In this document: piece by piece, positions 6,060-46,087 of the stretch | Layout: each line of letters begins with the position of its first letter | How positions within the stretch are numbered: position 1 is the stretch's first letter | IMG/VR virus record: IMGVR_UViG_3300047095_000752 | Location: 124,001-188,000 of that record | Length of the DNA: 64,000 nucleotides | Direction: 5' to 3' (one strand) | Position numbers and translations under genes: made by a program | The notes under the pieces: generated by a model | What the model was told of the DNA's origin: nothing | The model's input: only the letters and a program-made list of their open reading frames with translations | Databases searched by the model: none

Positions 6060-6071
6060 AACCATTATGAT

Positions 6072-27259: not shown

Positions 27260-27706
27260 TTATTTAACTTCAATTTTTATAGTATTGTCTTTGATTTCTT
27301 TTTGGCTGAATCCTAAGTATAGAATACCGTTATCCAGACTGTTTAACGACGGCTTATCAGCAACGTAGTTCGAGTTAATTTTAACTGTATAGTAATACTC
27401 TTTTGGTTTTGTCGATTCTTTAGAGTTGTAGTGTGGATTCGATACTATACCACGTACACTCAATTGATGATTCGATTTATTATATTGTACCGAGATGTCT
27501 TCTTTACGCACACCGGGTAACTCAAATGCGTACATGAGTTGTTTAGTGCCTTCACAAAAAGCCGTGGTGACGCCGTCTGGGTTGTAAACGTCTCCGTTTA
27601 ACACCGACTCTGGATTTGTGAACCACGCATCGAAACGGTCTAATTGGTTGAACATATCCTTTACTGGATTTAAATTTTTATGACGATTGTAAATATCTAC
27701 CCACAT
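27260..27706 (-). CDS. Small heat-shock protein (Hsp20 / alpha-crystallin)
   Basis: ELPGVRKEDISV...LSVRG...LDNGILYL. Confidence 0.88.
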   Translation of the reverse strand: MWVDIYNRHKNLNPVKDMFNQLDRFDAWFTNPESVLNGDVYNPDGVTTAFCEGTKQLMYAFELPGVRKEDISVQYNKSNHQLSVRGIVSNPHYNSKESTKPKEYYYTVKINSNYVADKPSLNSLDNGILYLGFSQKEIKDNTIKIEVK

Positions 27707-27785
27707 GATTATATCTCCTTTTTGGTTGGGTTTTAAAGTTAAACTAAAATTACAGCTTCCAGATGTTGGAAGCTGTATACATTAT

Positions 27786-27905
27786 AGCATTTGCCGTGCC
27801 AAAATGCAAATTTAGTTGTAACATGTTGATATAATTAGACTTATGATTTTTCTATATATTTGTGGATATAATATTCGCTCTATATTGAAACGGCAACTGT
27901 TTCAA
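27786..27905 (-). promoter_or_regulatory. Sigma54 promoter with IHF site and palindromic UAS upstream of hsp20
   Basis: TGGCACGGCAAATGCT (GG-N10-GC) at 27786-27801; TATCAAcatgTTA (WATCAANNNNTTR) at 27819-27831; TTGAAAC-N7-GTTTCAA at 27885-27905. Confidence 0.7.
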
Positions 27906-27915
27906 GGTGAAACGG

Positions 27916-28224
27916 TTAGTTTTTAAATTCTTTTACAATCTTATTGAATTTTCGGTTTATGGATCTTTGGTTTTCAGATTTAAATAATACTATCTCTTTT
28001 ATCTTTTTTACTACGGTTTTATCTACATGCTTTTGTTTTTTGTTTTTTACTTTTATATTAAAATTCCCAATAAAAGAATTTATTTTAGACTGTTTGTTGA
28101 GGGTGCAGACTGATATTGATACTGAGTACTTAAACTCTGAATCCGCCACACATTCGGGTAATTCCGTTATACTTAATATCTCATACTCTACATTAATTTG
28201 CTCTCTCATAGTACAAATCCTCAT
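27916..28224 (-). CDS. Hypothetical protein
   Basis: ORF preceded by both recurrent motifs. Confidence 0.5.
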   Translation of the reverse strand: MRICTMREQINVEYEILSITELPECVADSEFKYSVSISVCTLNKQSKINSFIGNFNIKVKNKKQKHVDKTVVKKIKEIVLFKSENQRSINRKFNKIVKEFKN

Positions 28225-28291
28225 ATTAAAAAAATAAATATATTTCTATACTCAATATTTAATATATATAATGTCTTTATATAAATTTGTC

Positions 28292-28678
28292 CTACGATTT
28301 GGCTTTGTAGTACTTTATACCAAGTTTGTCTAGCTCCGATTTTAACAATTGAATTCGCTCTTCGGAACTACTACAACAATCATTCTTTGTAATTGTATTT
28401 GAAACTCGGGTTGAATTCCAACCATATACTTTTCGCATTATACTAAGTGTGGTCATCTTTTGCTTTGAATTTTTATTTTCACACAGATTATATGTTATAC
28501 CATCGTCACCCTTTGGTTCCGAGTTTCTCAATATTGACTTTGATATTCCAGCTTTATTTATTAAAAACCCAACTAGACATTGACAGTCATCTTTATCGCA
28601 GAAGCTGCCTTTTATAAGCTTATCAGGTAACTGAACACGGGACGGCTTCTTGAGTGTGGGGGCTTTGACTGTTTTCAT
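28292..28678 (-). CDS. Hypothetical protein
   Basis: AAGGA RBS; CQCLVG motif. Confidence 0.55.
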   Translation of the reverse strand: MKTVKAPTLKKPSRVQLPDKLIKGSFCDKDDCQCLVGFLINKAGISKSILRNSEPKGDDGITYNLCENKNSKQKMTTLSIMRKVYGWNSTRVSNTITKNDCCSSSEERIQLLKSELDKLGIKYYKAKS

Positions 28679-29624
28679 TTTCGTATTCCTTTAGTCTAAG
28701 GTTAAACCAAGTGAGAAATTCATCTTGGTTGTATTTGGCTCTCTTGTCTGAGTTCTCGGTTCTTGTGATTATTCTTAAGTTTTCTCTTAAGTTGCAAATG
28801 GATTTGATTATGGCTTTATCATATTTTATGTCAAAATCGTTATCAACGAAAGCCGCTCGCGGAAATATATGATCCACTTCGTAAATATTTCTGAGATCGT
28901 GACGATGCTTTCTATTGTGTTTTGCTAGATATTTATTATTTAAAAAATCATTGTAGTTTGGATCATCTGATAGAATGTGAATTTGACTGTGGTGAAATGA
29001 TAAAAATTTTCGGCGAATATCTCTGGTCCGATCTATATTCCATCTCGTGTGGTTTTCACCTGATATACTTTTATAAAAACATTCTCTACATTTATAACCA
29101 TATTGAAAATCCCCAAATGTACGTTCAGATTTATGACCAGCCGGGCATTTCATTTCAAGTTTTGTATTAGCGTTTTTATATTCAGTGCTTAATAGAATAT
29201 AACCTGTAGATTCGATTGTTGATTTAACGTGTTCATATGAATGTTTTACTAAACCTGCGCATATCTTACATCTATTATTGTTATCTTTAAAACTATTAAA
29301 TATAACATCGTATGTATGATCTTTTGGGCATTTAACTGTTAATTTACTACAATTATTTTCATACACTCCCGATATATATTTATAACCTTTTGACTCTATA
29401 TAATTTATAACATCGTTTATATCTAATTTTCGTTTATTTAAACTGCATTGTTTACATCTACGTCCCGCTTTAAAATTGTTGTATATGGAGTAAAATATAT
29501 GATCATCGGGACATTTAATCTTTAGTTTATCACTATTTTTGGTATATGTTTTACTTAGTAGTTTATACCCGCTTTCTTTTTCAATTTCATTTTTAACATA
29601 TTCGTATTCTAATTTCTTAGGCAT
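28623..29624 (-). CDS. Zinc-finger-repeat HNH homing endonuclease (3 repeats)
   Basis: Three CPxxH..RCxxC repeats; DHIFPR...ICNLRENLRI. Confidence 0.8.
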   Translation of the reverse strand: MPKKLEYEYVKNEIEKESGYKLLSKTYTKNSDKLKIKCPDDHIFYSIYNNFKAGRRCKQCSLNKRKLDINDVINYIESKGYKYISGVYENNCSKLTVKCPKDHTYDVIFNSFKDNNNRCKICAGLVKHSYEHVKSTIESTGYILLSTEYKNANTKLEMKCPAGHKSERTFGDFQYGYKCRECFYKSISGENHTRWNIDRTRDIRRKFLSFHHSQIHILSDDPNYNDFLNNKYLAKHNRKHRHDLRNIYEVDHIFPRAAFVDNDFDIKYDKAIIKSICNLRENLRIITRTENSDKRAKYNQDEFLTWFNLRLKEYENENSQSPHTQEAVPCSVT

Positions 29625-31967
29625 TTATATCACTCCGTTGTCACTCAGATAATCTCCGATCAAGATGAACATACTGTCAGTATCGCCGTATGCAACATAT
29701 GGTAGATCGGAATTCTCAAAGTGTTCGATGTAGGATGTTTTAATAGTTGAATCATCCGTCTGTAAATAATTTGAAAGATGATATACGGAAAATTTAAGGG
29801 CTTCTTGACCTGTGCTGGTGATCGCTTTCGCCATATCTAGATTGTACATACGGAAAAATGGCAACCCCAGGATCCCATAAATGCTATTGCTGACAATTTT
29901 ATAACTGCTCTGTTTATTATCAAATTGCTTTAATTCTACCTTCATCCGCTCCTTAGTCACAGGATCCAGATCCGTATTTGTATTAATTTCTTGTCTAAGA
30001 TCGCCTAATTTCTTTTTATAAAGATCGCGCTGATCGCCCAAGTGAGTTAACACTTCGTGGAAGAATGATAGCTCAACTTCATGTTGAACAAAAAGGCATC
30101 CATTAATCGTTATAATATAATCATTCTTTACTATGAATTCTTCAAACTCAGCCGGAGTTAAATATATATCTTCGCTGGATCTAAGGATCGGATTAAGTGT
30201 AACCTTAATTTGATCCGGTAGTTGTGATTTTTTATATAGATATGAATATGCGTCTTTTTCTGACACTTTACCTTTGTATGTATTAGGTCCTATATTCATA
30301 GATTGAATTATTGATGGATACAGTGATTTAAAGTCAAAATCGACAACCCACTGGTGAACACCTACCTTTGGTTCCAGTACATATGCCCCTGAGAATGTCG
30401 CGTGATTTTGTTTTATTGAATTTCTGCATACTAAATTCTTATCCTTAGCGAACTTCAATAGAATTGGATCAACAAGACCAGATGTGGTCTCAGCCCGTCT
30501 CCAAGTACTACTACAAGTCTTTATAAGTTCAAATCGCAAATCTATATGGTGGAGAGCGTCTTCAAGTTCAGATAGCAGTACAGTATCAACCCCAGAATAT
30601 AATATAAACTTAACAAGATCACTTTCGTACATAGTATTAATGGTACCTTCAAAAGCGACTTTACCTTCACCCAGTACCTTCTGTGATATATTATTTAATT
30701 TATAACTTTCTTCTACATTTTGCGTAAGTTTTTTATATATTGCTAATTGGTCTACCATATATAGACCATATACTGTCGTCCCATAATATTCACTTATGTC
30801 AACATCAGCAAGTCCGATTGGAGACAATGAATCTACATCCAATCCCAATTTATGCATGCGATTTACTGTATAGGGCACATCGAATAGCTCTGAATTCCAC
30901 CCCGCCCAAACATCAGGATCGAGTTCTTTTGCTTTTTCTATAAATGCCGTTATAAGATCAGCTTCTGAGTCAAAAATCTTTATAATATATTCATTAATCT
31001 CTGGGAACACGCTTAAATTATCATATAAGCTCTTATGCCCTTTATTGTATGATGTTGTGTCCATTTCAGGTAGTTGTAGAATATAGACGTGTGTAGCCCC
31101 ATCACTGTCCAGTTTAAAAGATATCGAGTTAATCGGGAACTCAGCTTCAAGAGCGAATGGAAATGCTTTATGTTGTCCGGTATACACTTCAATATCCCAG
31201 TATAGTATCTTTAATTTATACTGGCATTCCGGTTCAGTTCTATTGTAATAATAGTCAATAGAATGTTTAATATCCGGTTTAACATCTTCTTCGTACATCG
31301 CTGTAGTTGGGAGAAGTCCAACTTTGGTTGTATGTAACTGTACGTCGGATACCTTCTTTATTATATCACTGTCTCTAATGTCCATAGGTACTGAATAGAA
31401 ATAAGTATCTTTTGAATTTACTGTGTGGTATTTTTTAGTTCCATTTGCATCTCTAAACACATATAGAATCTTACTTTTAAACTTATTGTATTGTATGTCA
31501 ATTAATATGTGATTTGAATCGTAACACCAATCGGGTAGTTTAAACGAGTGACATTTTGCTTCTTCATTTGTAACGACTGTGTTTATACTCTTTTCTCTAT
31601 TTTTAAAGTATAATTTAGATATGGTAGTAAATTGCTCTTCTACGAACGAATAGAAAAAGTCCAATTCACTACATACCTCGTCTAGATCATAAGTGATCAT
31701 CAACTTTATATCTTTATATTTAATACCTTTACCTACAACAGACTCAAACTTATCACCCAACTCGTCGTTAAACGTTTTCGTCACACCCTCCCCCATAATT
31801 ACAGTGAGTGTAGCATCTGTAGCTTTGATGTGATCTTCGGTTAGCTTACTTGTTGGATATATTTTATGATCTATCTTATCGAAGTTGTTAGTCTTCAAGA
31901 TCTTTTTGAATAACTTATTTTTTATAGTTTCTTGATTTGCATAAATTGCAATTGGAATTGAAGCCAC
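29625..31967 (-). CDS. Family B DNA polymerase, N-terminal subunit (UDG-like domain, 3'-5' exonuclease, palm motifs A-C)
   Basis: WDIEV (ExoI), GWNSELFD (ExoII), YSGVD (ExoIII), DFKSLYPS (A), KIVSNSIYG (B), YGDTDS (C); stop 15 aa after DTDS. Confidence 0.92.
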   Translation of the reverse strand: MASIPIAIYANQETIKNKLFKKILKTNNFDKIDHKIYPTSKLTEDHIKATDATLTVIMGEGVTKTFNDELGDKFESVVGKGIKYKDIKLMITYDLDEVCSELDFFYSFVEEQFTTISKLYFKNREKSINTVVTNEEAKCHSFKLPDWCYDSNHILIDIQYNKFKSKILYVFRDANGTKKYHTVNSKDTYFYSVPMDIRDSDIIKKVSDVQLHTTKVGLLPTTAMYEEDVKPDIKHSIDYYYNRTEPECQYKLKILYWDIEVYTGQHKAFPFALEAEFPINSISFKLDSDGATHVYILQLPEMDTTSYNKGHKSLYDNLSVFPEINEYIIKIFDSEADLITAFIEKAKELDPDVWAGWNSELFDVPYTVNRMHKLGLDVDSLSPIGLADVDISEYYGTTVYGLYMVDQLAIYKKLTQNVEESYKLNNISQKVLGEGKVAFEGTINTMYESDLVKFILYSGVDTVLLSELEDALHHIDLRFELIKTCSSTWRRAETTSGLVDPILLKFAKDKNLVCRNSIKQNHATFSGAYVLEPKVGVHQWVVDFDFKSLYPSIIQSMNIGPNTYKGKVSEKDAYSYLYKKSQLPDQIKVTLNPILRSSEDIYLTPAEFEEFIVKNDYIITINGCLFVQHEVELSFFHEVLTHLGDQRDLYKKKLGDLRQEINTNTDLDPVTKERMKVELKQFDNKQSSYKIVSNSIYGILGLPFFRMYNLDMAKAITSTGQEALKFSVYHLSNYLQTDDSTIKTSYIEHFENSDLPYVAYGDTDSMFILIGDYLSDNGVI

Positions 31968-31984
31968 GTGAAGTACCTTTTGGT

Positions 31985-33113
31985 TTATCTTTTAAATGCA
32001 GTTCTACGAATCAATCGAGTTGTATTTTTTCTGCTTACAAAATCATTTTCTGGAATCATATGATATAAATCTAAAAGAGACATACTCGCAAATTTACTAA
32101 ATAAAACTTTAAACATAGAATTTAAAATATAATCAAATCCATCGAGTCTTTCATAGGGTCTCTTTATGAATTTTGTTTTTTTATTATCATTTTTACAAAT
32201 AATAAATACGAATGAGAAAAAGTCAACTAATACACTATGTATAGCATCATGAATTAATAATGTAGTATAATATTCTATGTTTAGGTGATATCTAAATTTA
32301 GGCATAATTAAATACATGGGGTTGTAATAGTTTTCTTTTTTGTTCACTTTATAACCCTTACATTTTCATGATAGCGGTTGAATAGTTCTGAGTTACTACA
32401 GTAGTTGTGGTTATAATTTATTGTGAAGGATCTTCGGAAATTAGATCTGATCCCTAAGTCTAAAATTTTAACCGTGAACTTGAATTTCAGTCTGTTGAAA
32501 TCCAGATGTACGGTATAATAATCATTTCCTAATATTATAGCTATAAGTTTGGATAATTTTTTAACTTCTATTTGTTCCAACATATATGATATATAATATA
32601 TATTACTCCCGATATATCGAATTGATATTGGTGGTATAACTATTACACCGTGTGCCATAAATGCTCGTACTGATAATGGGTATATGACATTTGCTTAAAT
32701 TCAGTTCTTCTAAATTTATTTGAAGTTTTATCTTGTACAAGTATAGAACCATAAAACCAACATATCGCACGTAGATTGGCTGCGATTGGATAATGTATAT
32801 ATAAGGATAACTGAGTCAGGCATCCATAATATATATGCTTATCACTTTCGTTTCGGATACCATTTATTTTAAGTGTATTTTCGTTTTTCTTTCTGCGATA
32901 TCTTGGGATTATTATATTTGCATTCTTTCTTAGTGTAACCGACAACAATCCTTGAATGACACACATGGTCCTACCAAGTCCTTGTTGAAGTGTTTTTATT
33001 TTACCTTTATTCCCATATGAGATATCTTGATGTTGGTCGTGGATTTTATAATGATCTATATTTGGAAAGAATAAAAATAAAAATGGACTTTTACTTCTCT
33101 TTCTTATACTCAT
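31985..33113 (-). CDS. Three small hypothetical ORFs (31985-32347, 32344-32658, 32643-33113)
   Basis: Coupled ORFs between the two polymerase genes. Confidence 0.45.
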
Positions 33114-33445
33114 AGCAGTTTTATAAAGTTGGGGTTATTTTTTATTAGGGCGAGTAACGAATGTGATAATACTTCGATCATTTGCTCATAGAAGGAGTCG
33201 TCATCCTCGTCTAGGTTTAGACCGGCTTGAATCAGTATAGCGTGAAGGATCTCGTGTAAAATTGTAACTTCCATTTTACCTTTAGCTAAGGAACGTTTTA
33301 TAACGAGTTTTAAATTCTCATTATCTGTGTACGCAGAATAGTCGCCATCCGGGGTCATTTTTGGCTCATCTTCAAATACAATCTGATAGGTTAATGGTGA
33401 TATATATATTTCTTTTAGATCTGTTATTTTTTTGGCATCGGACAC
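33110..33445 (-). CDS. HExxH zinc metallopeptidase-like protein (ImmA/IrrE-like)
   Basis: TILHEILHAI ... EQMIE. Confidence 0.65.
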   Translation of the reverse strand: MSDAKKITDLKEIYISPLTYQIVFEDEPKMTPDGDYSAYTDNENLKLVIKRSLAKGKMEVTILHEILHAILIQAGLNLDEDDDSFYEQMIEVLSHSLLALIKNNPNFIKLL

Positions 33446-34404
33446 TGTGTTGACCTCTCGGTTGTATCGGTTGTATTATATTCATTTATCTTTTCATTAA
33501 ACCAAGCCATAAATTCTTCTTGGTTGTATTTACCACCTTTAGTGTTGTTATCTTTTTCGTGTATTATTCTTAAGTTTTCTCGTAGGTTGCAGATCTCTTT
33601 TATTATAGCCGGATCGTATATATTATCTAAGTTGTTATCAATAAATGCTATTCTCGGTTGAATGTGATCTACCGTATAATCAGATCTGTCCCATATATTA
33701 CTTGATGTCTTGGCGAGTTTTTGAGATTGGACGTGATTGTTGTAATTCGGATCATCATTTAATATATGTATTTTTTTATAATCAAACGATAAATATTTAG
33801 TTCTAGTTTGTCGGGTCCGGTCAGTCATCCAACGAACGTTATTTTCACCAGACTTATTTTCATAGGAACATTCCCTACACCTAACATCATTATTTTTAAA
33901 ATTATCAAAGATCATTTCTATTTTATGATTTTTAGGGCACAGTAGTTCGTCTTTATTTTTACAGCCTTTATATTCGGAAATTAACGTATAGCCATGATCT
34001 TTATAATAATTAAATACAAAATCATGACTATATTGCATTTTTATCTTATGACATTCTATACATCTACGTCGAGTCCTAAAATGGCTAAAACTCATTTCTA
34101 TTTTATGACCTTTCGGACATATCAATTCATCTTTTGTCATACACCCTTTATATTTAGAATTTAATGTATACCCACGTTTTTTATAATAATTTTCTACATA
34201 ACTTTCATCAGTTCTTTTATTTATATTTGAACATTCTCTACACTTGTGTCCGTTTTTAAAACTATTGAATAGCATTTCTATTTTATGATTTTTAGGACAT
34301 AATAATGTATTTTTTGTACGGGTATTAACATATTGTGTAAGTAATGTGTATCCACGTTCTGCATAATAATTAAATACGAATTCATGTGTTAATTTGTTTG
34401 GCAT
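33424..34404 (-). CDS. Zinc-finger-repeat HNH homing endonuclease (3 repeats)
   Basis: Three CPKxH repeats; DHIQPR...ICNLRENLRI. Confidence 0.8.
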   Translation of the reverse strand: MPNKLTHEFVFNYYAERGYTLLTQYVNTRTKNTLLCPKNHKIEMLFNSFKNGHKCRECSNINKRTDESYVENYYKKRGYTLNSKYKGCMTKDELICPKGHKIEMSFSHFRTRRRCIECHKIKMQYSHDFVFNYYKDHGYTLISEYKGCKNKDELLCPKNHKIEMIFDNFKNNDVRCRECSYENKSGENNVRWMTDRTRQTRTKYLSFDYKKIHILNDDPNYNNHVQSQKLAKTSSNIWDRSDYTVDHIQPRIAFIDNNLDNIYDPAIIKEICNLRENLRIIHEKDNNTKGGKYNQEEFMAWFNEKINEYNTTDTTERSTQCPMPKK

Positions 34405-34429
34405 AACTTTTCCTACATTATAGTTTAGT

Positions 34430-35206
34430 TTATTGAAATACTTGATCCATAGAATTTATGTTGTTTTGAATAAGAGCAAGAAGTACTTCCTTTACTCTGT
34501 CCGTCCATACGAATCGCAATTGTTCTGCCACGTTACATACATAATAGTCGGGTAACGATTCCTCTTCTGCGGGTAGGACCATATATTTCTGCTTAGATCC
34601 AATTAAATGCATGTTATCCAGAATACGCTGAGGTGCTTTCATTGGGTCGATCCCATTTATCCGGAAAAGATAACCTTTTGTACCGGGCGCAAAAGTTCGA
34701 TACTCTAGCATATTCCATAAGATCATCGCTTGTACCTGATACGGTGGCTTTCCCTTATATTCAGAAAGTGGCTTCGAAAAGTTCACGGATCCAGCAATCA
34801 ACTTAGAATTTTGATTACATAATTGTATAACTTCTTTTTCCGTGTCGACAATAAATTGCTTAATTTCATTTATGTTGATCTTCTCTACTTTCAAGATCAT
34901 ATCTAAGAGAGCTTGTACCTTTTCTTTGGTGTAAACCGGAAAGTTAGAGCGACGAATCACAAGTCCTTTTAGGTCGAATTCGGATACAGTTTTACCTTCT
35001 TTATTTTTTATAAAAAGACCATATTTCTTTTTTGTAAAGAATACCGCATTACTTGCCAATACTTCTTGTTTCAATTTTAGAGCATTATATTTGGGATTGG
35101 CTCGGTGCATCCTTATGAATTCGGGTAGTAGATCTTTATTTAAAATGTCTTCTAGCTTATGACACTCTTTTAAAACAATCTGTATAAGTTCTTCTTCGGT
35201 TTTCAT
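34430..35206 (-). CDS. Family B DNA polymerase, C-terminal subunit (rest of palm + thumb)
   Basis: LKQEV...FFTKKKYGL...KGLVIRRS (KKrY and KGxxxxRS motifs). Confidence 0.88.
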   Translation of the reverse strand: MKTEEELIQIVLKECHKLEDILNKDLLPEFIRMHRANPKYNALKLKQEVLASNAVFFTKKKYGLFIKNKEGKTVSEFDLKGLVIRRSNFPVYTKEKVQALLDMILKVEKININEIKQFIVDTEKEVIQLCNQNSKLIAGSVNFSKPLSEYKGKPPYQVQAMILWNMLEYRTFAPGTKGYLFRINGIDPMKAPQRILDNMHLIGSKQKYMVLPAEEESLPDYYVCNVAEQLRFVWTDRVKEVLLALIQNNINSMDQVFQ

Positions 35207-35670
35207 CTAAAAAGTTTCTTTTCAGCGATTGTTATTTTCTTTTTGGTTGGTTTTTTATTAGTCAACATATCTATAAGAGCTTTATTCTTTTCTTTTTCTG
35301 CAATCTTCATTAAAAGATCTATTTCATATTTTTTAAGTAGTGGGAATTTATCTTGAAGATCCTTGTATTCATATTTCTCTTTTTTCATATTTACATAGGA
35401 TAAAGTCCAAGGCGTTAATCTATTCTTTGTAGCTAGTTGTTTCAATTCTTTAAAGAAGCTCATTTTATATGGTTGTAAATTTTTATCATACAAATTATAT
35501 TTATTATATAGATCATTTAAGTATATAGTTATATCCGAGTTGATACAAGTAAACATTGCCAAAGCACTTACAATGTAAATAGCCTTGGTAATGTCTGGAT
35601 CTAATTCGGATTTCATATCACCGTCGCATAACCACTGTTTAAAAGTGTTATACGGACTTACTGGTGCCAT
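35203..35670 (-). CDS. Hypothetical protein, possibly a clamp-loader small subunit (gp62-like)
   Basis: Size, helical character and position next to the polymerase only. Confidence 0.3.
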   Translation of the reverse strand: MAPVSPYNTFKQWLCDGDMKSELDPDITKAIYIVSALAMFTCINSDITIYLNDLYNKYNLYDKNLQPYKMSFFKELKQLATKNRLTPWTLSYVNMKKEKYEYKDLQDKFPLLKKYEIDLLMKIAEKEKNKALIDMLTNKKPTKKKITIAEKKLFR

Positions 35671-36020
35671 TACGATACCTCTCGTCGTTGATTTTCAATT
35701 CGTTTATTATTCTGAGCGTTAAGAAATTTTTCGTGATTCAGTGAGTCTTTTCTAAAATTCAATAATACCTGTCTTAAATAAATCGATTGCTTTCTTACGC
35801 TTAGGGGTAATCGGTTCTTATTAGTAGTTGAAGCTTTCTCTGCTAAGTTTATTAATTTCCCGAATTCTTTCTTAAGATTTTCGAGAGAGTCTCTATAAAG
35901 CCGGTTTGTTTCAATATTGTTATTTATATCATTATAACAAACTTCGCACAAGGCTACACTTTTATCATCAAACATATACGACGTTTTTGATGGTTTAAAA
36001 CAATGAATACATTGATTCAT
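35670..36020 (-). CDS. CxxC-CxxC protein with a basic C-terminal helix
   Basis: CIHC/CEVC; VRKQS..LRQ.L..FRK.S resembles Hc1-like small proteins. Confidence 0.45.
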   Translation of the reverse strand: MNQCIHCFKPSKTSYMFDDKSVALCEVCYNDINNNIETNRLYRDSLENLKKEFGKLINLAEKASTTNKNRLPLSVRKQSIYLRQVLLNFRKDSLNHEKFLNAQNNKRIENQRREVS

Positions 36021-36031
36021 AATTTTAGCCT

Positions 36032-36892
36032 TTATGTTGGTGTTGGGGGGTGGGTATAGATTTCGGATTGTGATATTATCATACCTTTAGATCTATAAAA
36101 CATAGTTATATCATCCGGCATTTTATTGTTCGTGAATATATTCCACTGCTTATGTTTTTCATTAGAGTTCGTTACATCTATACATGTGTAGGTTCTATCT
36201 TTCAACCCTAATTTCATAGTTTTAAATTTGTAAATAACAGTTTCGGAATCATGTTCTATATAACCAACCACTGCACAGTTTCTATATTTTGATGTGGACT
36301 TCATATAATAATTTGAAATGTTATTATCATCAGATGCATAACTTTGATCTCGACTTCGAGACCCACACTCTACATATGCCCAAATAGGTTTATCTAATTT
36401 AAATATCCCATTTATAGATTTGTTATTTAATTCAAAATACAAAACACAGTGTAAATATACATGATTTGACTCCATGTTGTATACATATGGGGTCAATCTT
36501 AAATTTATCTTTATATCACCCTCTCGCATTTGTTCAGATGTCGAGGCTTGTCTATGTGGAGGGTAAACCTGACTCGCCAAATCATACGGTGTACTTGAAA
36601 TTTCAATACCTGCATTTTTTTGATCTGATGTAAATGCTGGGATTCGGCATCGTAAAAAGTATAATACTTTTCTTGAAAGTTGAACGGACTGATACATTGT
36701 GATATTGATGATTTTATGATATAAAGAATACGCTAAATCAAATTTTACGATACATGGTAGTATCGTTTTGTTGATTGCATATATTAACTTTAAATTATTT
36801 TTTATTCGATTGGATACAACAGCTTCTGACCCGAGTGAATATGAATATTCATCGTTGTTGTAGGAATCTTCTCTTGACCTCATATACGACAT
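36032..36892 (-). CDS. Hypothetical protein
   Basis: 286-aa ORF. Confidence 0.55.
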   Translation of the reverse strand: MSYMRSREDSYNNDEYSYSLGSEAVVSNRIKNNLKLIYAINKTILPCIVKFDLAYSLYHKIINITMYQSVQLSRKVLYFLRCRIPAFTSDQKNAGIEISSTPYDLASQVYPPHRQASTSEQMREGDIKINLRLTPYVYNMESNHVYLHCVLYFELNNKSINGIFKLDKPIWAYVECGSRSRDQSYASDDNNISNYYMKSTSKYRNCAVVGYIEHDSETVIYKFKTMKLGLKDRTYTCIDVTNSNEKHKQWNIFTNNKMPDDITMFYRSKGMIISQSEIYTHPPTPT

Positions 36893-37097
36893 GGCGCAAT
36901 ACTTTTCCTTTTTCGAAGTTGTTCTGAGCGGGTGGTAGAAAGCGATAATACTTAATCAATTGTTCATCAGTTGCATTTCGTACCTCATCGATTGTAGGAA
37001 AAGTTGCCTTCCAATCGAATCGCCCATAGTTAAACTTCTTGTAGGTGGAATTTGTATTGTCGGTTGATGTTTGCTCTGTCATTTTTGTGTTCTCCAT
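36849..37097 (-). CDS. Hypothetical protein
   Basis: ORF with YYRFLP motif. Confidence 0.5.
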   Translation of the reverse strand: MENTKMTEQTSTDNTNSTYKKFNYGRFDWKATFPTIDEVRNATDEQLIKYYRFLPPAQNNFEKGKVLRHVVYEVKRRFLQQR

Positions 37098-37137
37098 CGC
37101 TGAAGTTAAGGTTTAAGGTTATATCTACATTATACTG

Positions 37138-38490
37138 TTAATTTGTTGTTTTGTCAACCTTTTTAATCTGTTCTTCGAATGTATTGACTACGGATTCGGG
37201 ACTTATATGCTGTGTGCAACCGGGTAGTAAATTACTAACTCGGAATGGACATCTATGTTCCTTACTATTCAAATAACAGGGGTAAAAGCCACACTCATTG
37301 TTCCATGTATCGTCTGGATTCAGCCCCTGTACGGTTTCGTATCCACCAACCACATTGTATGCTGGGTAGGGTCCACAAATCGTCACAGCGGGCTTCCCGA
37401 GCGCCCCGGAAATATGGGCAAAGGAAGAGTCAATCGTAATCCCACCAACGCACGCGGAATAGATTGCAATTGCTTTTGTGATTGTATCGGACACGGCAGC
37501 AAGATTGAGTATATTATCACGATTTTCGATAAATGACTTATTTGACAACTGTGGGCTTAATATTGCGTTTGTACCTTTATTTTTAATATCAATATAATTT
37601 AAAGTATTAACGATAAAATTATTAACTTCAGGTTGCCTCTTAATATTATCAATAATACCAACCTTATATCCCCGCCCAATCAGAAGGCGACAAATCTCAG
37701 CCCATTTTTCATCTGGGTAGGCACGTAGATTTGATGTCGATGTCATATGTAGCAACACTGTATTATTTGGAATCAGTAACTTCATAGATTTCATTAAAAT
37801 GTGATTTGGAATTAATTTTGAAATGTAATCTTTTGAATCATATGTGAATTTACAAACGTCTCGATAAACATCATAATAATTCTGCTTCTGAGCAGCTTCA
37901 CAATTTTCAATGGCACCAATAAATGTAAGGTGATAATCATGAGCCATCATAAGCTTGGCGTCTAGAGGGAAGGGTACGACATTGTCAACGATACCCGGAG
38001 GGAAGTTGCTAAACAGTTCCATAAAGGCTGGCTTCGTAGAATATGTAATTTTACAGGAAGGCCATCGGTCTTTAATATGCTTGAGTACACTCTGGGATAC
38101 AATCAAGTCACCCAACCCACCCATACGCATTACAAGTAGAGATTTGTTGGTTAGGTCTTGACCCATATATCGGTTACATATATCTTCGAACTTAAGCTTA
38201 GATGGTTTTAAACATTTCTTTGTATCACCCTTTGTCTTATATCCATCCATAAAAATTGAAAGTGGGAGAACGTAATTATTTCCCGACTTCATTTGATATA
38301 CGTCGTCGAATGTAAAATCGCGAGTCACTCTTGCGATTGTCATTGCCGTGGGTGCTTCAAGAAGTTCTTGTATATTTTTAAACTTACGATCCGTCACATA
38401 ATTTTCAAGTCCAAATTTCTTAACCACATCTTTTGTTAACTTGAATTTCTTATGTGCATCTTTATATGAATTTAGATTTTTCTTCGCCAT
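37138..38490 (-). CDS. Glycosyltransferase family 9 (heptosyltransferase-like); likely start MAKK at 38490
   Basis: RMGGLGDLI; ITIDSSFAHISGALGKPAVTICGP; C-terminal CxPC...C...C. Confidence 0.85.
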   Translation of the reverse strand: MAKKNLNSYKDAHKKFKLTKDVVKKFGLENYVTDRKFKNIQELLEAPTAMTIARVTRDFTFDDVYQMKSGNNYVLPLSIFMDGYKTKGDTKKCLKPSKLKFEDICNRYMGQDLTNKSLLVMRMGGLGDLIVSQSVLKHIKDRWPSCKITYSTKPAFMELFSNFPPGIVDNVVPFPLDAKLMMAHDYHLTFIGAIENCEAAQKQNYYDVYRDVCKFTYDSKDYISKLIPNHILMKSMKLLIPNNTVLLHMTSTSNLRAYPDEKWAEICRLLIGRGYKVGIIDNIKRQPEVNNFIVNTLNYIDIKNKGTNAILSPQLSNKSFIENRDNILNLAAVSDTITKAIAIYSACVGGITIDSSFAHISGALGKPAVTICGPYPAYNVVGGYETVQGLNPDDTWNNECGFYPCYLNSKEHRCPFRVSNLLPGCTQHISPESVVNTFEEQIKKVDKTTN

Positions 38491-38564
38491 GCCTTTAGTC
38501 CTCTGCGGTGATTGTTTCGGTTTGTGAGTGTATGATATCACACAAAACTTTTTTTTTCAATACC

Positions 38565-39395
38565 GGACAGATTTATGTAAACCACTCGGGGGAGGAACGA
38601 AGAGGGGGGTTAGGGGGGTGATGAAAGGAGGGGGCAAAACTAATTGAAATCGGAAGAATAGGAAATTGTAATTTATGGAACGAAGTGGAATAAATTAGAA
38701 TTTCTGTAGAAAGATCATGAAAATATAAAAACAGAAAGATCAAAAATAAAATTGTAATAAATAGAGAAATATATTGAATATGTGAAACTACTAAAATATA
38801 AAGAAATAGATCTAAGTAAAAATTAAAAGTGAAACTTTAAAATTTACTTGCTAAAAAGTTTAGATCGAAATTAATAAAAAAGATCAAGTAAATGGAATAA
38901 ATTAAAACTTCAATATTATTTTCAAGTGGGAACTCCTTTTTTGGATTTCCCATCTTTTAATTAATATTTCCGAATTTCAATATGAAATAATTTTACAATA
39001 TTGTTTTCAAGCGTAAGCTTTTAAATAATATTGTTTTTTATTTTTAATAAAATTTATTTATTGAGATTTTATTTTAAAGATCAGATATAAGATCAGGAAT
39101 ACTGTTTACGAATATTAATTTAAAATCCAGAGTCATACTCCCATTTCATTCCCGTATGACTCTGGACATATTGAGATATAATATACAATCTTCTTATAAT
39201 ATGTACTATATAATATTATATCTATAACTTTTTTGTAAAATATCTCAATTATCTCAATTTAGTATATAAAGTATTGATATTGAAAGAGTTACAAAACTTG
39301 AGATAAGGTTGAGTAGTTGAGATGTAGCGGAAAAATTCAGGGACTGTAATTTTTCCATAGCTTAAATTATAATAAAACTTGAATTTTGACCTATT
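38565..39395. other. Long non-coding region, candidate replication origin
   Basis: No ORF of 60 aa or more. G-tracts 38588-38634; A-rich strand-biased tract with 7 AGATC; 16-bp direct repeat 38911/38996; 13-bp hairpin 39126-39166; TTGAGAT repeats; IHF consensus 39267-39279. Confidence 0.6.
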
Positions 39396-40930
39396 TAAAT
39401 TACAAGTGGACTCAAATCCGCTTGAGATGATGTGTGGAGGTTAGGATCCAATTTAAACTTTGTGGTGTGTCCGAATTTTGAGAAAGAAACAGTCCACCCA
39501 TTCATTTCCAGTACATCAGTGTTTTCTTTTAATCTTCTGGCGAATACTCTTGGTTTTAATTTATTTGAATATGCTGTATTGGACTCCAATATTTTGATAA
39601 TTTCAGTCGGAGTACCTTCAATATAATTATATCCAATTTTATTAAAATCAAATTCTATAATCGATTGTATCAGTGGATCTAGATCCGTAAGGTTTTGCAG
39701 TTGAGAATTTACAATTGTTTTAATTATAGTAGAAATGTTAAATGTAGAATCAGTCGGTATTAAATGTTGAAGTAATTCACCAAATCTTGTAAATCTATAT
39801 TTCTCGGTAAATTTAATATTATTTGTATTCTTTAAAAATGATTGTGCTTCGTAAGCTAATTCCGATAATATATTACTTCTATTATCTAATATAAATTTTA
39901 TTAATAATTCTTCAGGTATTGAATAATCTATTCTATCTTCAAAGAATATTGGGAGGACTCTATCCTTGATATCCTCCCGCTTAGCGAAGTTCGCATTCCT
40001 CGTAGTTATAATCATAGATGATACAATTTGTTTTTTATGAGTTTTAGAATCTGAGAATAAAATTCGCTCACCAAGTTCACCACCAGTTGCAGCCAATGTC
40101 ATTGTGTCTGGAAACCAACTCGGCGGTTTTGAATCTAAGTTATCTATAGCGTAAACAAAATTCTCAGTTATACAAGCCATCAGACTTCTTTTATTATCTG
40201 GAAAAATTGAAACATTACTTCTCTCGCCCATGAATAATTTTATGATAGCTTTTGAAGTTAATGTCTTACCCGAACTTTTATTTCCGTAAAATAATAAAAT
40301 TGGTAGTGGTTTTATTTTTAATAGAGTACCTACAATCCAAGACTTCAACACATATTTTTGAATCTCTCCGGTGTAGATATAAGTACCATCTGGAATAAGG
40401 ACATTTATATTAAAAGCGTCGGTACATGAATATACAGAATTACAATTAGAAGGTTCCCAATCGGGAAGTGTATAGTCGCCATCAAAATATATATCGCTGT
40501 ATCCATTTTTAACTTTAATTAGATTATCATGTTCGTCGAAAGTCACTATATGTTTATCGCCACAACTTACATATAATTTATTATTAAAGATACAAGTGAA
40601 TTTATGTAAAGTTATAATTCGGTCACTTAGTAGTATCTTGTCTTTTATATAATTGAATAATTCTTTTGAAAATTTGTTTTGAAAAAAATCAACTCCGAAG
40701 GTTACATTAAACAGAGATTGAATTTCCTGATATGATGCGTCGAACTGGACGACTTCCCCGGATGGTAGGTGTATATATGGCACATACTTTTCTTTTTCGT
40801 TTATAACTTTAAATACATGATTACCTTCATATAGTATGTTAAATATAGTTTCTTTTATTTTTATTAGAGCCTTTGGATTTTTCTTTCTTTTATTTAGAAA
40901 CGAAAAAATCAACTTTTGAATTGAGTCCAT
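39395..40930 (-). CDS. P-loop replication ATPase / helicase-like protein with C-terminal wHTH
   Basis: Walker A GNKSSGKT; YAIDNLD; ATGG..xERILFSD; ITT; DIKDR. Confidence 0.7.
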   Translation of the reverse strand: MDSIQKLIFSFLNKRKKNPKALIKIKETIFNILYEGNHVFKVINEKEKYVPYIHLPSGEVVQFDASYQEIQSLFNVTFGVDFFQNKFSKELFNYIKDKILLSDRIITLHKFTCIFNNKLYVSCGDKHIVTFDEHDNLIKVKNGYSDIYFDGDYTLPDWEPSNCNSVYSCTDAFNINVLIPDGTYIYTGEIQKYVLKSWIVGTLLKIKPLPILLFYGNKSSGKTLTSKAIIKLFMGERSNVSIFPDNKRSLMACITENFVYAIDNLDSKPPSWFPDTMTLAATGGELGERILFSDSKTHKKQIVSSMIITTRNANFAKREDIKDRVLPIFFEDRIDYSIPEELLIKFILDNRSNILSELAYEAQSFLKNTNNIKFTEKYRFTRFGELLQHLIPTDSTFNISTIIKTIVNSQLQNLTDLDPLIQSIIEFDFNKIGYNYIEGTPTEIIKILESNTAYSNKLKPRVFARRLKENTDVLEMNGWTVSFSKFGHTTKFKLDPNLHTSSQADLSPLVI

Positions 40931-40953
40931 AAAAGGTTTCCTTGTTTGAAAAT

Positions 40954-40977
40954 GCCGCCCGGTAAGTTCCGGGCGGC
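40954..40977 (-). terminator. GC-rich hairpin (terminator or attenuator) upstream of the ATPase gene
   Basis: GCCGCCCGG-N6-CCGGGCGGC. Confidence 0.55.
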
Positions 40978-40991
40978 GATTAATTCGTTTA

Positions 40992-41087
40992 TCAGTCGTC
41001 TGTGTAGTCGTCTCCTATGGAACGAGCTACTGTTATAAGGAGGACCACAAAAATGAAAAACGCAAATAAAACATTAACCAATTCCAT
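40992..41087 (-). CDS. 31-aa single-pass membrane peptide (not in the ORF track)
   Basis: MELVNVLFAFFIFVVLLITVARSIGDDYTDD*; GGAG RBS. Confidence 0.55.
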   Translation of the reverse strand: MELVNVLFAFFIFVVLLITVARSIGDDYTDD

Positions 41088-41141
41088 TACTTCACTCCCG
41101 AGTTAAAGTTTAGATTCAATAATTAATATATATAATCGGGT

Positions 41142-41170
41142 TTGACTTTAGACCAAAAGGGTGGTATCAT
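41142..41170 (+). promoter_or_regulatory. Sigma70-like promoter
   Basis: TTGACT-N17-TATCAT with TGG. Confidence 0.55.
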
Positions 41171-41200
41171 TTAGATACAAACCACAACGGAGTTTCTTTT

Positions 41201-43147
41201 ATGAAAATCGAACAAGAGTTCAATTGGTATTCCAACACGGTATATGAATATTTCGATAATGTTCAAAATTCAAAACTATCATTTCATCTAGAATCTGGAT
41301 TATCTAAAAATGACACTGGAATGATGAATTATACAAATACAAGACTATCCGTTAAAATTAAAGATAATCAGATTAATCAAAAGGTTGAGTTTGAGCTTAG
41401 CTTTGATGACGTATACATATTAAATACAATTATAGGGTCCATATCCAAAACCCCCGGTAAACCACCAATTCCAATTAATTCATACACGAAAAATAAACAA
41501 AGACAATTAGTCGTGTATGAACCGTCTCCCGGCTTATTTAATTTAAGCATAACAGATAATAGTACAATCGCTAAGACATTGGTAGTCGCTTTTAAAAAGG
41601 TGACCCTTGCGGCTATGAATGATGTAATCTCCCAGTTAAAATCCAATTGGCTTATACTGTCATCAAATGCACAATCAATTGTAACTACCCATAGCGTCCT
41701 TAATCATCTAGAAGCTATTGATAAACATATAACAGAATCTAATGTAATTGCTTTACATAATACAAATAACGTAAAACAACCTACAGCCATCCGCCGTGTA
41801 GATCCGGTTACATCGGTGGTTGCCCCTCCTGTAGTACATATAGATAATGAATTTGAACCAGACCTTGAAATGGAGACTTCCGAATATGAAGACATAGACT
41901 CAACTCCCGTATTTGATATCGATACCAGTGGGGCGAGTGAAGCTGAAACTGATCCACCGGTCGGGTTTGTACTTGATGATAATGTCCTTAGTTCAGTGTC
42001 CCTGACCGCTGCTGGGGAGTCTGGTACAACAGACTACACTAAACGACCAAAGCAAGTCATAACCCCTCGTCCGTTTATCAATAATTTTATCGAATGGAAT
42101 TTGGATAATATTTATCAATGGGTTACCGGATTTGTATATTGTGATCAGAATTCAGATCAACTGACATTAACGCCACTGGACCTTATATTAACTAAATCTA
42201 TTGGAAAACATAAATATGAATTTTTAACTAACAATCCCCATCATTATGAATTTGAATATCACATTTTAGATGTCATTAAAAAGGCTATGAAGTCTTATGT
42301 GGAAACTGGTAAGACTAAGACAACCGTAAATTATTATGTAGATACTAATACAATTGATAAAAATAATGATATAGATTTATGGAATTTCACGGTAGATCTA
42401 ACAGTATTAATTAATGTCTTCAAAATATTCTTGATAAATGTAAATCAACTTAATCTTAAGTCTGAAGAAAGTCTTGAAAAGACATTCAATGTAAAGATGG
42501 CATATATATTCTTAGACACCATCGCATGTACATTTTTATCAAAAATAAACCATGAAGATACAGAACAATTTACGTCAGACTCAATTAATGTATTCCAGCA
42601 GATGTCAGATCGTGGTTCGTTTGATTCTATATTGAATACATACTCAGCATTATCAATGGGTGGAAAACTCCAACTGAACATAAGCATGTTCAAGGCTTGC
42701 GCGGACAAATTCTTAGAAATACAGTCTAATAAAGACAAAGTATGTATAGACACTTTAAATATTGGTATAAATGGTATAGAACATATACGTGAAAAATTAG
42801 AGACAGTTATACAAAAGCCGAAGAAAGTAAAATCACCTCAAGTTAAATTATTCTGTAAGTATTTGAAAAATAATGACTTAGACGACTCTAACTATAAAGA
42901 TTGCTACGAATTATTAGAATTCGACATGACGGAAGAAACCAACACTGATATTATAAAGGTATACGGTATTCTACGTATGAACCCAAATATAACTAAAATG
43001 ATCCAGTTAGAAAATCACATTGATTCTAAAGAACAAGTAGAAGAAACCCCCACAGTTCCTGAACCAACTCAAAAGTCTGAGCATGAAGTATTCGATATCT
43101 GGGATATTGACGACTCCGACGAATCCCTTTTCAACTTGGAAGATTAA
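41201..43147 (+). CDS. Hypothetical protein with acidic linker and acidic C-terminus
   Basis: 648-aa ORF. Confidence 0.7.
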   Translation: MKIEQEFNWYSNTVYEYFDNVQNSKLSFHLESGLSKNDTGMMNYTNTRLSVKIKDNQINQKVEFELSFDDVYILNTIIGSISKTPGKPPIPINSYTKNKQRQLVVYEPSPGLFNLSITDNSTIAKTLVVAFKKVTLAAMNDVISQLKSNWLILSSNAQSIVTTHSVLNHLEAIDKHITESNVIALHNTNNVKQPTAIRRVDPVTSVVAPPVVHIDNEFEPDLEMETSEYEDIDSTPVFDIDTSGASEAETDPPVGFVLDDNVLSSVSLTAAGESGTTDYTKRPKQVITPRPFINNFIEWNLDNIYQWVTGFVYCDQNSDQLTLTPLDLILTKSIGKHKYEFLTNNPHHYEFEYHILDVIKKAMKSYVETGKTKTTVNYYVDTNTIDKNNDIDLWNFTVDLTVLINVFKIFLINVNQLNLKSEESLEKTFNVKMAYIFLDTIACTFLSKINHEDTEQFTSDSINVFQQMSDRGSFDSILNTYSALSMGGKLQLNISMFKACADKFLEIQSNKDKVCIDTLNIGINGIEHIREKLETVIQKPKKVKSPQVKLFCKYLKNNDLDDSNYKDCYELLEFDMTEETNTDIIKVYGILRMNPNITKMIQLENHIDSKEQVEETPTVPEPTQKSEHEVFDIWDIDDSDESLFNLED

Positions 43148-45097: not shown

Positions 45098-46087
45098 ATG
45101 CCTGACCTTATTCGGGATAAAATGTGGGTCGAGAAATATCGACCACGCGACCTGAAGGACTTAATCCTTCCGGATAATATGAAATCATTTTTTGAAAATT
45201 GTATAGCAAATAAATCGATACCAAATTTAATATTACATGGTCGCCCCGGAACGGGTAAGACTACATTAGCTCAAATATTAATTGATAATATAGTTGGTAC
45301 ATCCAGCGAAGACAGAGAATATAATTTACTACAATTGAATGGAAGTTTAAATACCGGTGTAGATACTGCCAGAAATCTTATAACCGGATTCATTAAGATT
45401 CCCGCCCTTAATGAATCACAATTGAAAATTATACATATTGACGAGGCAGACTACACATCCAGCGCGTTGCAAGCTGCCTTAAGAAATATAATTGAAGAGA
45501 GTGCATCTTCATGTCGATTTATTTTTACACTAAATTCTAAACATAAGATTATGGAAGCCTTATTTTCTCGTTGCCAATCGTTCGAATTTAAGAAAACCAT
45601 ATCTAAAGAATATATCCTAAAACATATAGCAAATATACTAAAAATTGAAACTGGTCTTGAAAATAAAGATAGTATTATCTCAGAACATATTAAAAGATCA
45701 TACCCAGATATTAGACGAATTATAAACGATGTCCAACAGACTGTTGTAGACAATGTAATATCAGAAGAAATAGTAATACAACATACATTTGAAGATGACA
45801 TTATAAATAATATTAAAGAATTTGGTAAATATGTAAAATTGAATGATAAAGTTGGATTGACATCCAAAATAAAAGAAATTGAAAAACTATTAAATGATAA
45901 TGATATAGATTATATTAATATATACGAAAAATTGTTCGAAGATGAGGGGATAAGCTTCGCATCAAAGATATTAGTAAGCGAACATTGTAATAAACATCAA
46001 GATACATTAGTACCTAATATGAACTTTATAGCAATGCTTTATAAAATAATCGAAACTATGTATAAAAAATTAAAACTGATATCATAA
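45098..46087 (+). CDS. Clamp loader AAA+ subunit (RFC small / T4 gp44-like)
   Basis: WVEKYRP, GRPGTGKTT, IDEAD, QAALR, SRC, PDIRR. Confidence 0.93.
   Translation: MPDLIRDKMWVEKYRPRDLKDLILPDNMKSFFENCIANKSIPNLILHGRPGTGKTTLAQILIDNIVGTSSEDREYNLLQLNGSLNTGVDTARNLITGFIKIPALNESQLKIIHIDEADYTSSALQAALRNIIEESASSCRFIFTLNSKHKIMEALFSRCQSFEFKKTISKEYILKHIANILKIETGLENKDSIISEHIKRSYPDIRRIINDVQQTVVDNVISEEIVIQHTFEDDIINNIKEFGKYVKLNDKVGLTSKIKEIEKLLNDNDIDYINIYEKLFEDEGISFASKILVSEHCNKHQDTLVPNMNFIAMLYKIIETMYKKLKLIS

Follow-up and report, generated by a model that had tools for sequence, protein, structure and literature searches.

A replicative family B DNA polymerase (PolB) resembling T4 gp43 appears to be encoded at a single phage locus by two genes that stand in reversed order. 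The locus lies in a window of 64,000 nucleotides comprising bases 124001-188000 of the 245,225-bp IMG/VR virus record IMGVR_UViG_3300047095_000752, which is estimated to be 78% complete; positions given below refer to this window unless a relative is named. The gene polN would provide the N-terminal subunit of the enzyme up to shortly after the catalytic motif C, and the gene polC, situated upstream of it, the C-terminal remainder. On the basis of sequence comparisons and models of the single chains, the two polypeptides are proposed to assemble non-covalently into the replicative polymerase and the exchange of their order is considered old and lineage-wide, a reading to which a probability of about 0.8 is assigned.

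Organization of the split polymerase genes

The product of polN contains a degenerate uracil-DNA glycosylase (UDG)-like domain at its N-terminus, followed by the N-terminal domain (NTD), the 3'-5' exonuclease, and the palm and fingers, which include motifs A, B and C. This protein matches Pfam DNA_pol_B_exo1 (PF03104, E 4e-19), positions 11-236 of the 453 in DNA_pol_B (PF00136, E 6e-34) and positions 17-590 of the 856 in phrog_262 (E 3e-103), and aligns to residues 107-628 of T4 gp43 and 104-628 of RB69 gp43. The remaining palm with the KKKY (KxY) motif, the thumb and a conserved C-terminal tail are found in polC, the sequence of which includes FFTKKKYGLF and LKGLVIRRSNFP (KGLVIRRS) and matches positions 259-379 of the 453 in DNA_pol_B and 597-764 of the 856 in phrog_262. 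In both Pfam and PHROG, the profile coverage of the two proteins is complementary with zero overlap. The KxY motif and the thumb are present, but they reside on the separate polC chain instead of on the single chain of T4 and RB69 gp43.

The last residues of polN are ...YGDTDSMFILIGDYLSDNGVI*, with the stop codon 15 residues past YGDTDS. The break, which by the published RB69 domain limits corresponds to RB69 residue ~636-640, separates motif C from KKRY within the second segment of the palm. Alignment to the intact genes of two relatives (loci L011 and L032) shows neither loss, duplication nor addition of residues at this position, and every split member is broken in the same loop. The region 28623-35670 has every gene on the minus strand (Table 1). 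polC is positioned 2.46 kb upstream of polN in the direction of transcription, so that it is transcribed first, and five open reading frames (ORFs) of 326, 111, 156, 104 and 120 amino acids (aa) lie between the two. This agrees with the original prediction, made from the letters of the window, of a 780-aa gene that ends 15 residues past YGDTDS and a separate 258-aa gene for the KKKY/KGxxxRRS part ~2.5 kb upstream with five genes between. Its proposal that the order is permuted and that the gene is truly split at the loop after motif C is upheld by the profile complementarity and by the relatives described below.

The catalytic residues of both enzymatic activities are retained. The exonuclease motifs DIEV (D258/E260), WNSELFD (D363) and YSGVD (D461) of polN are invariant in 19 homologs, and motifs A (DFDFKSLYPS), B (KIVSNSIYG) and C (YGDTDS) are all invariant in homologs as well, including the polymerase residues D543/D545, K690/N694/G698 and D762-S765. 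Among 21 polC homologs of 247-275 aa, 37 columns are invariant and K59, K60 and Y62 nearly so.

The ATGA overlap between up155 and polC suggests translational coupling. Homologs of up155 are found directly upstream of polC in permuted relatives and upstream of intact polB in more distant relatives. The candidate promoter and the candidate terminator-like hairpin may frame one transcription unit, so that polC and polN might be co-transcribed; both are pattern matches only, and as the total of sigma-70-like sites in the pattern scan was not above chance, the site at 37129-37157 is to be taken as a candidate only.

Table 1. Features of the polymerase locus and HNH-family genes, in window coordinates
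Feature	Position	Strand	Length	Description
HNH-family paralogs in the window	4054-4803, 5304-6062, 28623-29624, 33424-34404, 48830-49732, 52344-53204, 54318-55070			
Candidate terminator-like hairpin	27751-27777	-		11-bp stem and T run; pattern scan; downstream of the polC/polN block
HNH1	28623-29624	-	333 aa	Free-standing HNH-type putative endonuclease; phrog_681, phrog_559, CapR x3
polN	29625-31967	-	780 aa	N-terminal subunit, split family B DNA polymerase
Three small ORFs	31985-33113	-	156, 104, 120 aa	Between p111 and polN
p111	33110-33445	-	111 aa	HExxH protein; phrog_1233 (E 6e-15), Peptidase_M78 (E 2.7e-4), M78/IrrE-like below Pfam cut-off
HNH2	33424-34404	-	326 aa	Free-standing HNH-type putative homing endonuclease; phrog_559, phrog_681, CapR
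polC	34430-35206	-	258 aa	C-terminal subunit, split family B DNA polymerase
up155	35203-35670	-		Conserved upstream neighbour; stop codon overlaps polC start (ATGA)
Candidate sigma-70-like promoter	37129-37157	-		TTGACA-17-TATAAT, 12/12; pattern scan; upstream of the polC/polN block

Gene order among relatives

No close DNA relatives among cultured phages were found with megablast, and the best cultured protein matches are T4-like gp43 proteins with <30% identity. A single-protein locus search in IMG/VR found nothing, and the loci compared here (L numbers) were obtained by an alignment-based search. A comparison of gene order in relatives, which had been advised together with the original prediction, shows that the polC-first order of the window recurs in 13 other loci with 34-77% identity, two of which (L034 and L035) are near-identical. 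On the contigs that were read, polC is followed by polN on the same strand in L005, L006, L007/8, L009/13/14, L010, L012 and L025, and a metagenome scan adds the permuted loci L034/35, L036, L039, L040 and L046. The two genes are separated by as little as 8 nt (L012) or 41 nt (L025), by one small gene in L005, L007 and L010, and by five genes and 2.5 kb in the window. Furthermore, stand-alone C fragments form 19 further clusters at 90% identity (247-263 aa, 44-85% identity), and the contigs with C fragments also carry N fragments, which measure 777-808 aa or, when they include an intein, ~1190 aa.

More distant relatives encode an uninterrupted polB ORF of ~1077-1111 aa, which is found in 15 IMG/VR loci and ~45 metagenome loci, partly on the same contigs. 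The genes around permuted loci are ordered F2-[polC][polN]-F3-F4-DnaB, where F3 is a radical SAM protein, and those around intact loci F2-[polB]-F3-F4-DnaB. As the same genes flank both, the halves must have been swapped in place.

A collinear split at the same loop was found in two loci, L037 and L041. In L041 (4893-4919), polN ends with ...KELIVI and the stop codon TGA, followed by 21 nt with AAGGAAAGGAGAGG and then by ATG and DDPIVQ. The sequence of L041 is that of intact L011/L032 in which the Lys codon of 'K-DDP' has been replaced by a cassette of stop codon, Shine-Dalgarno sequence and start codon. This 21-nt spacer is reminiscent of the untranslated sequence between the two cistrons in Aeromonas phage 44RR. 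The halves in L037 (2128-4985) are 2.8 kb apart, and the insert contains three ORFs on the opposite strand (287, 103 and 346 aa) for which no Pfam match was found.

Authenticity and function of the two genes

The window is present in public lake-water metagenome runs. In the Logan contigs of four such runs, at least one of which may be the source sample of the record, positions 29400-35300 were recovered with zero differences, and in two of the four they lie on a single contig. The sole 'joint' reported in this check was a cross-match between HNH paralogs. In addition, divergent relatives that were independently assembled have the same polC-polN order. The four unchanged runs and the shared order rule out an assembly artefact, which had been named beforehand as something that would undo the split.

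Comparison of the window with its closest relative L006 gave a proportion of nonsynonymous differences (pN) of 0.145 for polN and 0.173 for polC, with the synonymous proportion (pS) saturated at 0.80 and 0.85. Selection is given here as pN well below pS, since saturated synonymous sites preclude a dN/dS value. Judged by these figures, both genes are under strong purifying selection. AlphaFold2 (AF2) modeled polN alone with a predicted local distance difference test score (pLDDT) of 88. For polC alone, the thumb scored >90 and the palm strands at residues 39-83 below 50, and the best Foldseek matches of the model are RB69 and T4 gp43. The low-confidence strands fit a segment that folds only against polN, with the palm sheet being completed in the complex. 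In the proposed enzyme, exonuclease and fingers would come from polN together with the portion of the palm that bears motifs A, B and C, and polC would add the other palm strands, including the KxY motif, as well as the thumb and the C-terminal tail; the break would lie in a surface loop within the palm, and the sheet would be completed across the subunit interface. The C-terminal tail of T4 gp43 binds the sliding clamp. By analogy, the polC end ...F(E/Q), and ...LTF of intact relatives, may correspond to this clamp-binding tail.

Two other accounts of the gene products have to be considered. The ORFs could be relics of a broken polB in a phage replicated by the host polymerase or by another one encoded outside the record; defective genomes do occur in metagenomic assemblies, and about 22% of the genome may be missing at the estimated completeness of about 78%. 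This account is very improbable: both pieces are intact, their catalytic residues are invariant across lineages with saturated synonymous sites, the architecture recurs in at least 13 other lineages, and no second polB, family A polymerase (PolA) or Pol III alpha was found in the 245-kb record, so an intact polB that would turn the halves into pseudogenes was not found in the part of the genome at hand. Alternatively, the halves could be joined into one chain, either by RNA trans-splicing or back-splicing (a permuted intron-exon arrangement) or by a split intein. Precedents are the PolB of Nanoarchaeum, the halves of which are united by a split intein, and the split inteins of fractured phage genes (PMC2677866), and one relative has an intein 17 residues upstream of the break. 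We give such joining hardly any credence, as neither end carries extra residues compared to intact homologs, Rfam intron families have no match at E<=1 in 27500-36500 and a domain search found no intein domain in the genome. Moreover, each piece has a start and a stop codon of its own and both ends are abutted or overlapped by neighbours, with polC overlapping up155 and HNH1 adjoining the polN stop codon, leaving no room for intron or intein halves, and the polC-polN gap in L012 is just 8 nt. Intron, trans-splicing and intein were rejected on these grounds, in line with the earlier statement that neither intein nor intron is visible at the break. With both halves conserved and under purifying selection throughout a deep clade and with no other polymerase in the record, the heterodimer that had been proposed is the most reasonable product, and we infer that the two chains assemble physically and are active. 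The split of polB is real, and it is very probably a functional and old arrangement of a lineage, not an error or a dead gene.

Origin of the reversed order

A maximum-likelihood (ML) tree was built of 44 polymerases, in which the N and C parts of split enzymes were concatenated for alignment only. The 14 permuted genes, the two collinear-split genes and two intact genes (L011 and L032) form a clade with 100% support, within which the intact and collinear-split genes group at 99%. A single origin of the permuted form was not rejected by the approximately unbiased (AU) test (p 0.32).

The proposed route has two steps. The gene would initially have been split collinearly, as in two sister lineages, in one of which the split is a 21-nt spacer of stop codon, Shine-Dalgarno sequence and start codon. 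The N-C pair would then have been duplicated in tandem and the outer copies lost, which would yield a strictly local swap with the flanking genes unchanged. Splitting first, followed by duplication of the pair, is favoured because it accounts for a break without loss or overlap and for flanks that are unchanged, and because every intermediate would be viable. Given that the two products are separate proteins, gene order would be irrelevant to function, which would allow the swap to become fixed. Later insertions into this hot spot would account for the HNH genes, p111 and the three small ORFs.

Several points weigh against the two-polypeptide enzyme and its proposed history. The AU test rejects an all-split clade that excludes L011/L032 (p 0.005), so that splitting first requires either re-fusion in the L011/L032 lineage or two splits at the same loop. 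The base of the 18-member clade lacks resolution in the ML tree, and a tandem-duplicate or overlapping intermediate was not found among about 90 loci. The record being ~78% complete, its missing part could encode another polymerase. Lastly, the heterodimer is a prediction from sequences and single-chain models.

The same end state could be reached if a whole, intact polB had been duplicated in tandem, with the first copy losing its 5' end and the second its 3' end, and with the collinear splits in L037 and L041 being an independent event at the same permissive loop. This possibility, less likely but one that deserves to be kept in mind, also leaves the flanks unchanged. It accords with polC having kept the native polB stop codon, followed by a Shine-Dalgarno sequence, and polN the native start and the UDG end, and with the tree, which places intact L011/L032 with the collinear splits and apart from the permuted groups. 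However, two independent truncations at the same codon would be needed, yet the break is clean and without overlap; the search among about 90 loci speaks against this route too, and as the nearest sister lineage is split collinearly at the same loop, one split is simpler. The original prediction had instead suggested that the permutation was perhaps due to recombination involving the HNH paralogs, and that the split may have removed a homing site. It is true that a paralog follows each polymerase half in this genome, and homing endonucleases are known to break and rearrange phage genes, with fractured genes being documented (PMC2677866, PMC2988022). Nevertheless, the order is older than these insertions, since it occurs without an adjacent HNH gene down to 34% identity (L005, L007, L010, L012, L025, L036, L039, L040 and L046, 34-58%), and L006, the closest relative, lacks HNH2. 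The paralogs HNH1 and HNH2 align over their full length at 42% identity (E 2e-78), their DNA matches are short (71-77%), and the family to which they belong has 14 copies. Furthermore, recombination between direct repeats on the same strand would delete the intervening sequence, not swap it. Recombination between the HNH paralogs is therefore abandoned as a highly improbable cause. The suggested removal of a homing target finds no support: the DNA of motif C is retained in polN, and L007 has an intein in motif C of a polN that is already split. The reading of an early collinear split followed by duplication of the pair is retained.

HNH endonuclease genes

That a zinc-finger HNH gene follows each polymerase half, as had been noticed from the sequence, is correct. 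In both HNH1 and HNH2, three CapR-like zinc-ribbon modules are combined with an HNH-like motif at the C-terminus. Their matches to phrog_559 and phrog_681 reach E values down to 1e-30, the match to Pfam HNH_4 is weak and below the cut-off (E 0.009), and VDHI...N...N is visible in both. The ATG of HNH1 directly follows the TAA of polN in frame (junction GGAGTGATATAAATG), and the last polN codons, GGAGTGATA (29616-29636), supply the Shine-Dalgarno sequence for HNH1. The same abutment of polN stop and HNH start is seen in L006 (14625-14640), where the HNH protein is just 43-49% identical.

The HNH genes vary between relatives. At the position of HNH1, L006 has a paralog and L007 has none, with a copy elsewhere in its locus. 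HNH2 is inserted between polC and the 111-aa gene; this site is empty in L006, L005, L007 and L010, and HNH2 was seen in the window alone. In L006, an unrelated HNH_3/NUMOD4 gene precedes polC and no HNH gene follows it. Because their presence varies between close relatives and many permuted relatives lack them, the HNH genes are not regarded as the cause of the swap. From their sequences and distribution, HNH1 and HNH2 would behave as free-standing homing endonuclease genes that settled beside replication genes after it.

Seven of the 14 members of the CapR-zinc-ribbon/HNH family in the 245-kb record are located in the window (Table 1). With roughly one copy every 17 kb, this single homing-endonuclease family is expanded to an unusual extent. 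The identity of HNH2 to other copies (44-50%) exceeds that to HNH1. A different homing endonuclease of 533 aa (phrog_3339) is encoded at 58586-60187. HNH2 contains an internal triple repeat at 33897-34381, with tandem units of 180 nt each and 68-74% identity, that encodes its three zinc-ribbon modules. A search for flanking repeats revealed no long or high-identity ones, only these zinc-ribbon repeats and weak matches between paralogs. Excision or recombination between flanking repeats was considered but found no support.

Neighbouring genes, inteins and the UDG-like domain

The HExxH protein p111 has homologs between polC and polN in L005, L006, L007 and L010 and none there in L012, L025 and L009, so that its occurrence at this position is limited to one subclade. 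With a dN/dS of ~0.06 compared to L006, it is under strong purifying selection, and a regulatory or proteolytic role tied to the replisome is conceivable. p111 was rejected as an ancestral part of the swap, since L012, L025 and L009 lack it and intact genes have no homolog beside them. For the 156-, 104- and 120-aa ORFs no Pfam or PHROG match was found. The 156- and 104-aa ORFs have homologs in the same place in L006, and the match of the 120-aa ORF is marginal; the three are confined to the window and L006, being absent from L005, L007 and L010. Beside the replication module, several large ORFs at 36032-43147 (467, 511, 648, 404 and 286 aa) are without a PHROG match at E<=1e-5, and a clamp loader gene is found nearby at 45098-46087. 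Uncharacterised genes make up much of the replication-region content of this phage.

A LAGLIDADG intein interrupts polN at motif C (YGD^TDS) in L007 (9097-12687), and also in P0031, P0032 and L035. The insertion site of this type of intein lies 17 residues before the end of an already split polN. In L009, a protein of >1581 aa with several intein and HNH domains adjoins DnaB.

A family-4-like UDG domain (PF03167, E down to 2.5e-20) is fused to the N-terminus of PolB in relatives, both intact and split. The N-termini of L009, L011, L012 and L029 carry the UDG-like domain, with the CxxC, AEAP and HPS motifs intact in these relatives. In the subclade of the window, the domain (31488-31967, polN residues 1-160) is shortened and has lost the CxxC, AEAP and HPS motifs, and it is probably an inactive relic. 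The otherwise intact polB of L051 has an in-frame stop codon inside the N-terminal UDG domain (2577-2579), which may be a sequencing error, reflect a later true start or represent an independent loss of the UDG part.

Comparison with known split polymerases

Split family B polymerases are already known, and what appears to be new here is the reverse order of adjacent genes. In the literature searched, the coverage of which is incomplete and which offers no proof of absence, no description of an adjacent, order-swapped split PolB was found. The closest analogy is with gp43A/43B of the Aeromonas phages 44RR and 25, described by Petrov, Karam and co-workers, which are encoded by two collinear cistrons and the products of which co-purify and are active (PMC2988022). 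Both systems comprise a T4-type family B polymerase in two cistrons, in both the cistrons can be separated by a short untranslated sequence (cf. the 21-nt spacer of L041), and both loci have free-standing homing endonuclease genes, putative ones here. However, the genes are collinear there and permuted here, and identity to T4-like gp43 proteins is <30%. The position of the split differs too: the split-fragment families phrog_2062 and phrog_1918 meet near polN residue 660, before motif B, which is ~120 residues further upstream than the break at 780, after motif C. The comparison with gp43A/43B drawn in the original prediction therefore holds as an analogy, but not for the split site.

In the chimallivirus PhiKZ, gp82 (DNAP-N) and gp50 (DNAP-C) form a stable 1:1 complex that was resolved by cryoEM and resembles RB69 gp43 (PMC13648687). 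This too is a two-subunit phage family B polymerase that is split within the palm and encoded by genes that are not collinear. In contrast to the polymerase described here, it is split after motif A in a large palm insertion, with motif C on the C subunit. Moreover, the PhiKZ genes are far apart, the enzyme is much larger, at 1369 aa, and the phage belongs to another lineage.

Archaeal split PolBs reportedly have a small C-terminal piece similar in size to polC (~220-260 aa) and are split near motif C. According to the account in PMC3984812, the family B enzyme PolB1/PolB2 of Methanothermobacter is encoded by two unlinked genes (Kelman et al. 1999), and PMC2677866 cites the split PolB of Nanoarchaeum equitans as the product of unlinked genes, the halves of which are rejoined by a split intein (Choi et al. 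2006). The likeness is that a family B polymerase is encoded by two genes; the archaeal enzymes are cellular and their genes distant, whereas the genes here are adjacent and swapped, and the split intein of Nanoarchaeum is absent here.

Fractured genes of environmental phages retain their original order, and nearly all have split-intein halves flanking an endonuclease (Dassa et al. 2009; PMC2677866). As in these cases, an essential replication gene of an uncultured aquatic phage is divided in two at one locus where homing endonuclease genes are present. The present locus differs in that it has no intein halves, a reversed order and endonuclease genes that are secondary.

Implications

Annotation pipelines would call phages of this kind polymerase-truncated or miss the 258-aa subunit, several homologs of which have no recorded Pfam match. 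The loop after motif C would tolerate a break, and this may be useful for the engineering of split polymerases. What sets the arrangement apart is that the genes are adjacent and reversed, that large aquatic phages have kept this order throughout a deep lineage, and that sisters with intact and collinear-split genes survive. The family thus offers a comparative system for how an essential enzyme normally made as one chain can be interrupted within the catalytic palm and remain functional, and for whether gene order affects the assembly of a split enzyme. On a more speculative view, which we put forward as rather doubtful, the family represents a series from the intact gene via a collinear split by the 21-nt cassette to the adjacent swapped order, and the swap is not neutral but has been kept by selection on assembly order. 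polC, being made first on a polycistronic mRNA, would then be available to bind the palm strands at the C-terminal end of polN as these emerge from the ribosome. If true, this would be a natural permutation of gene order tuned to the co-translational assembly of a split polymerase.

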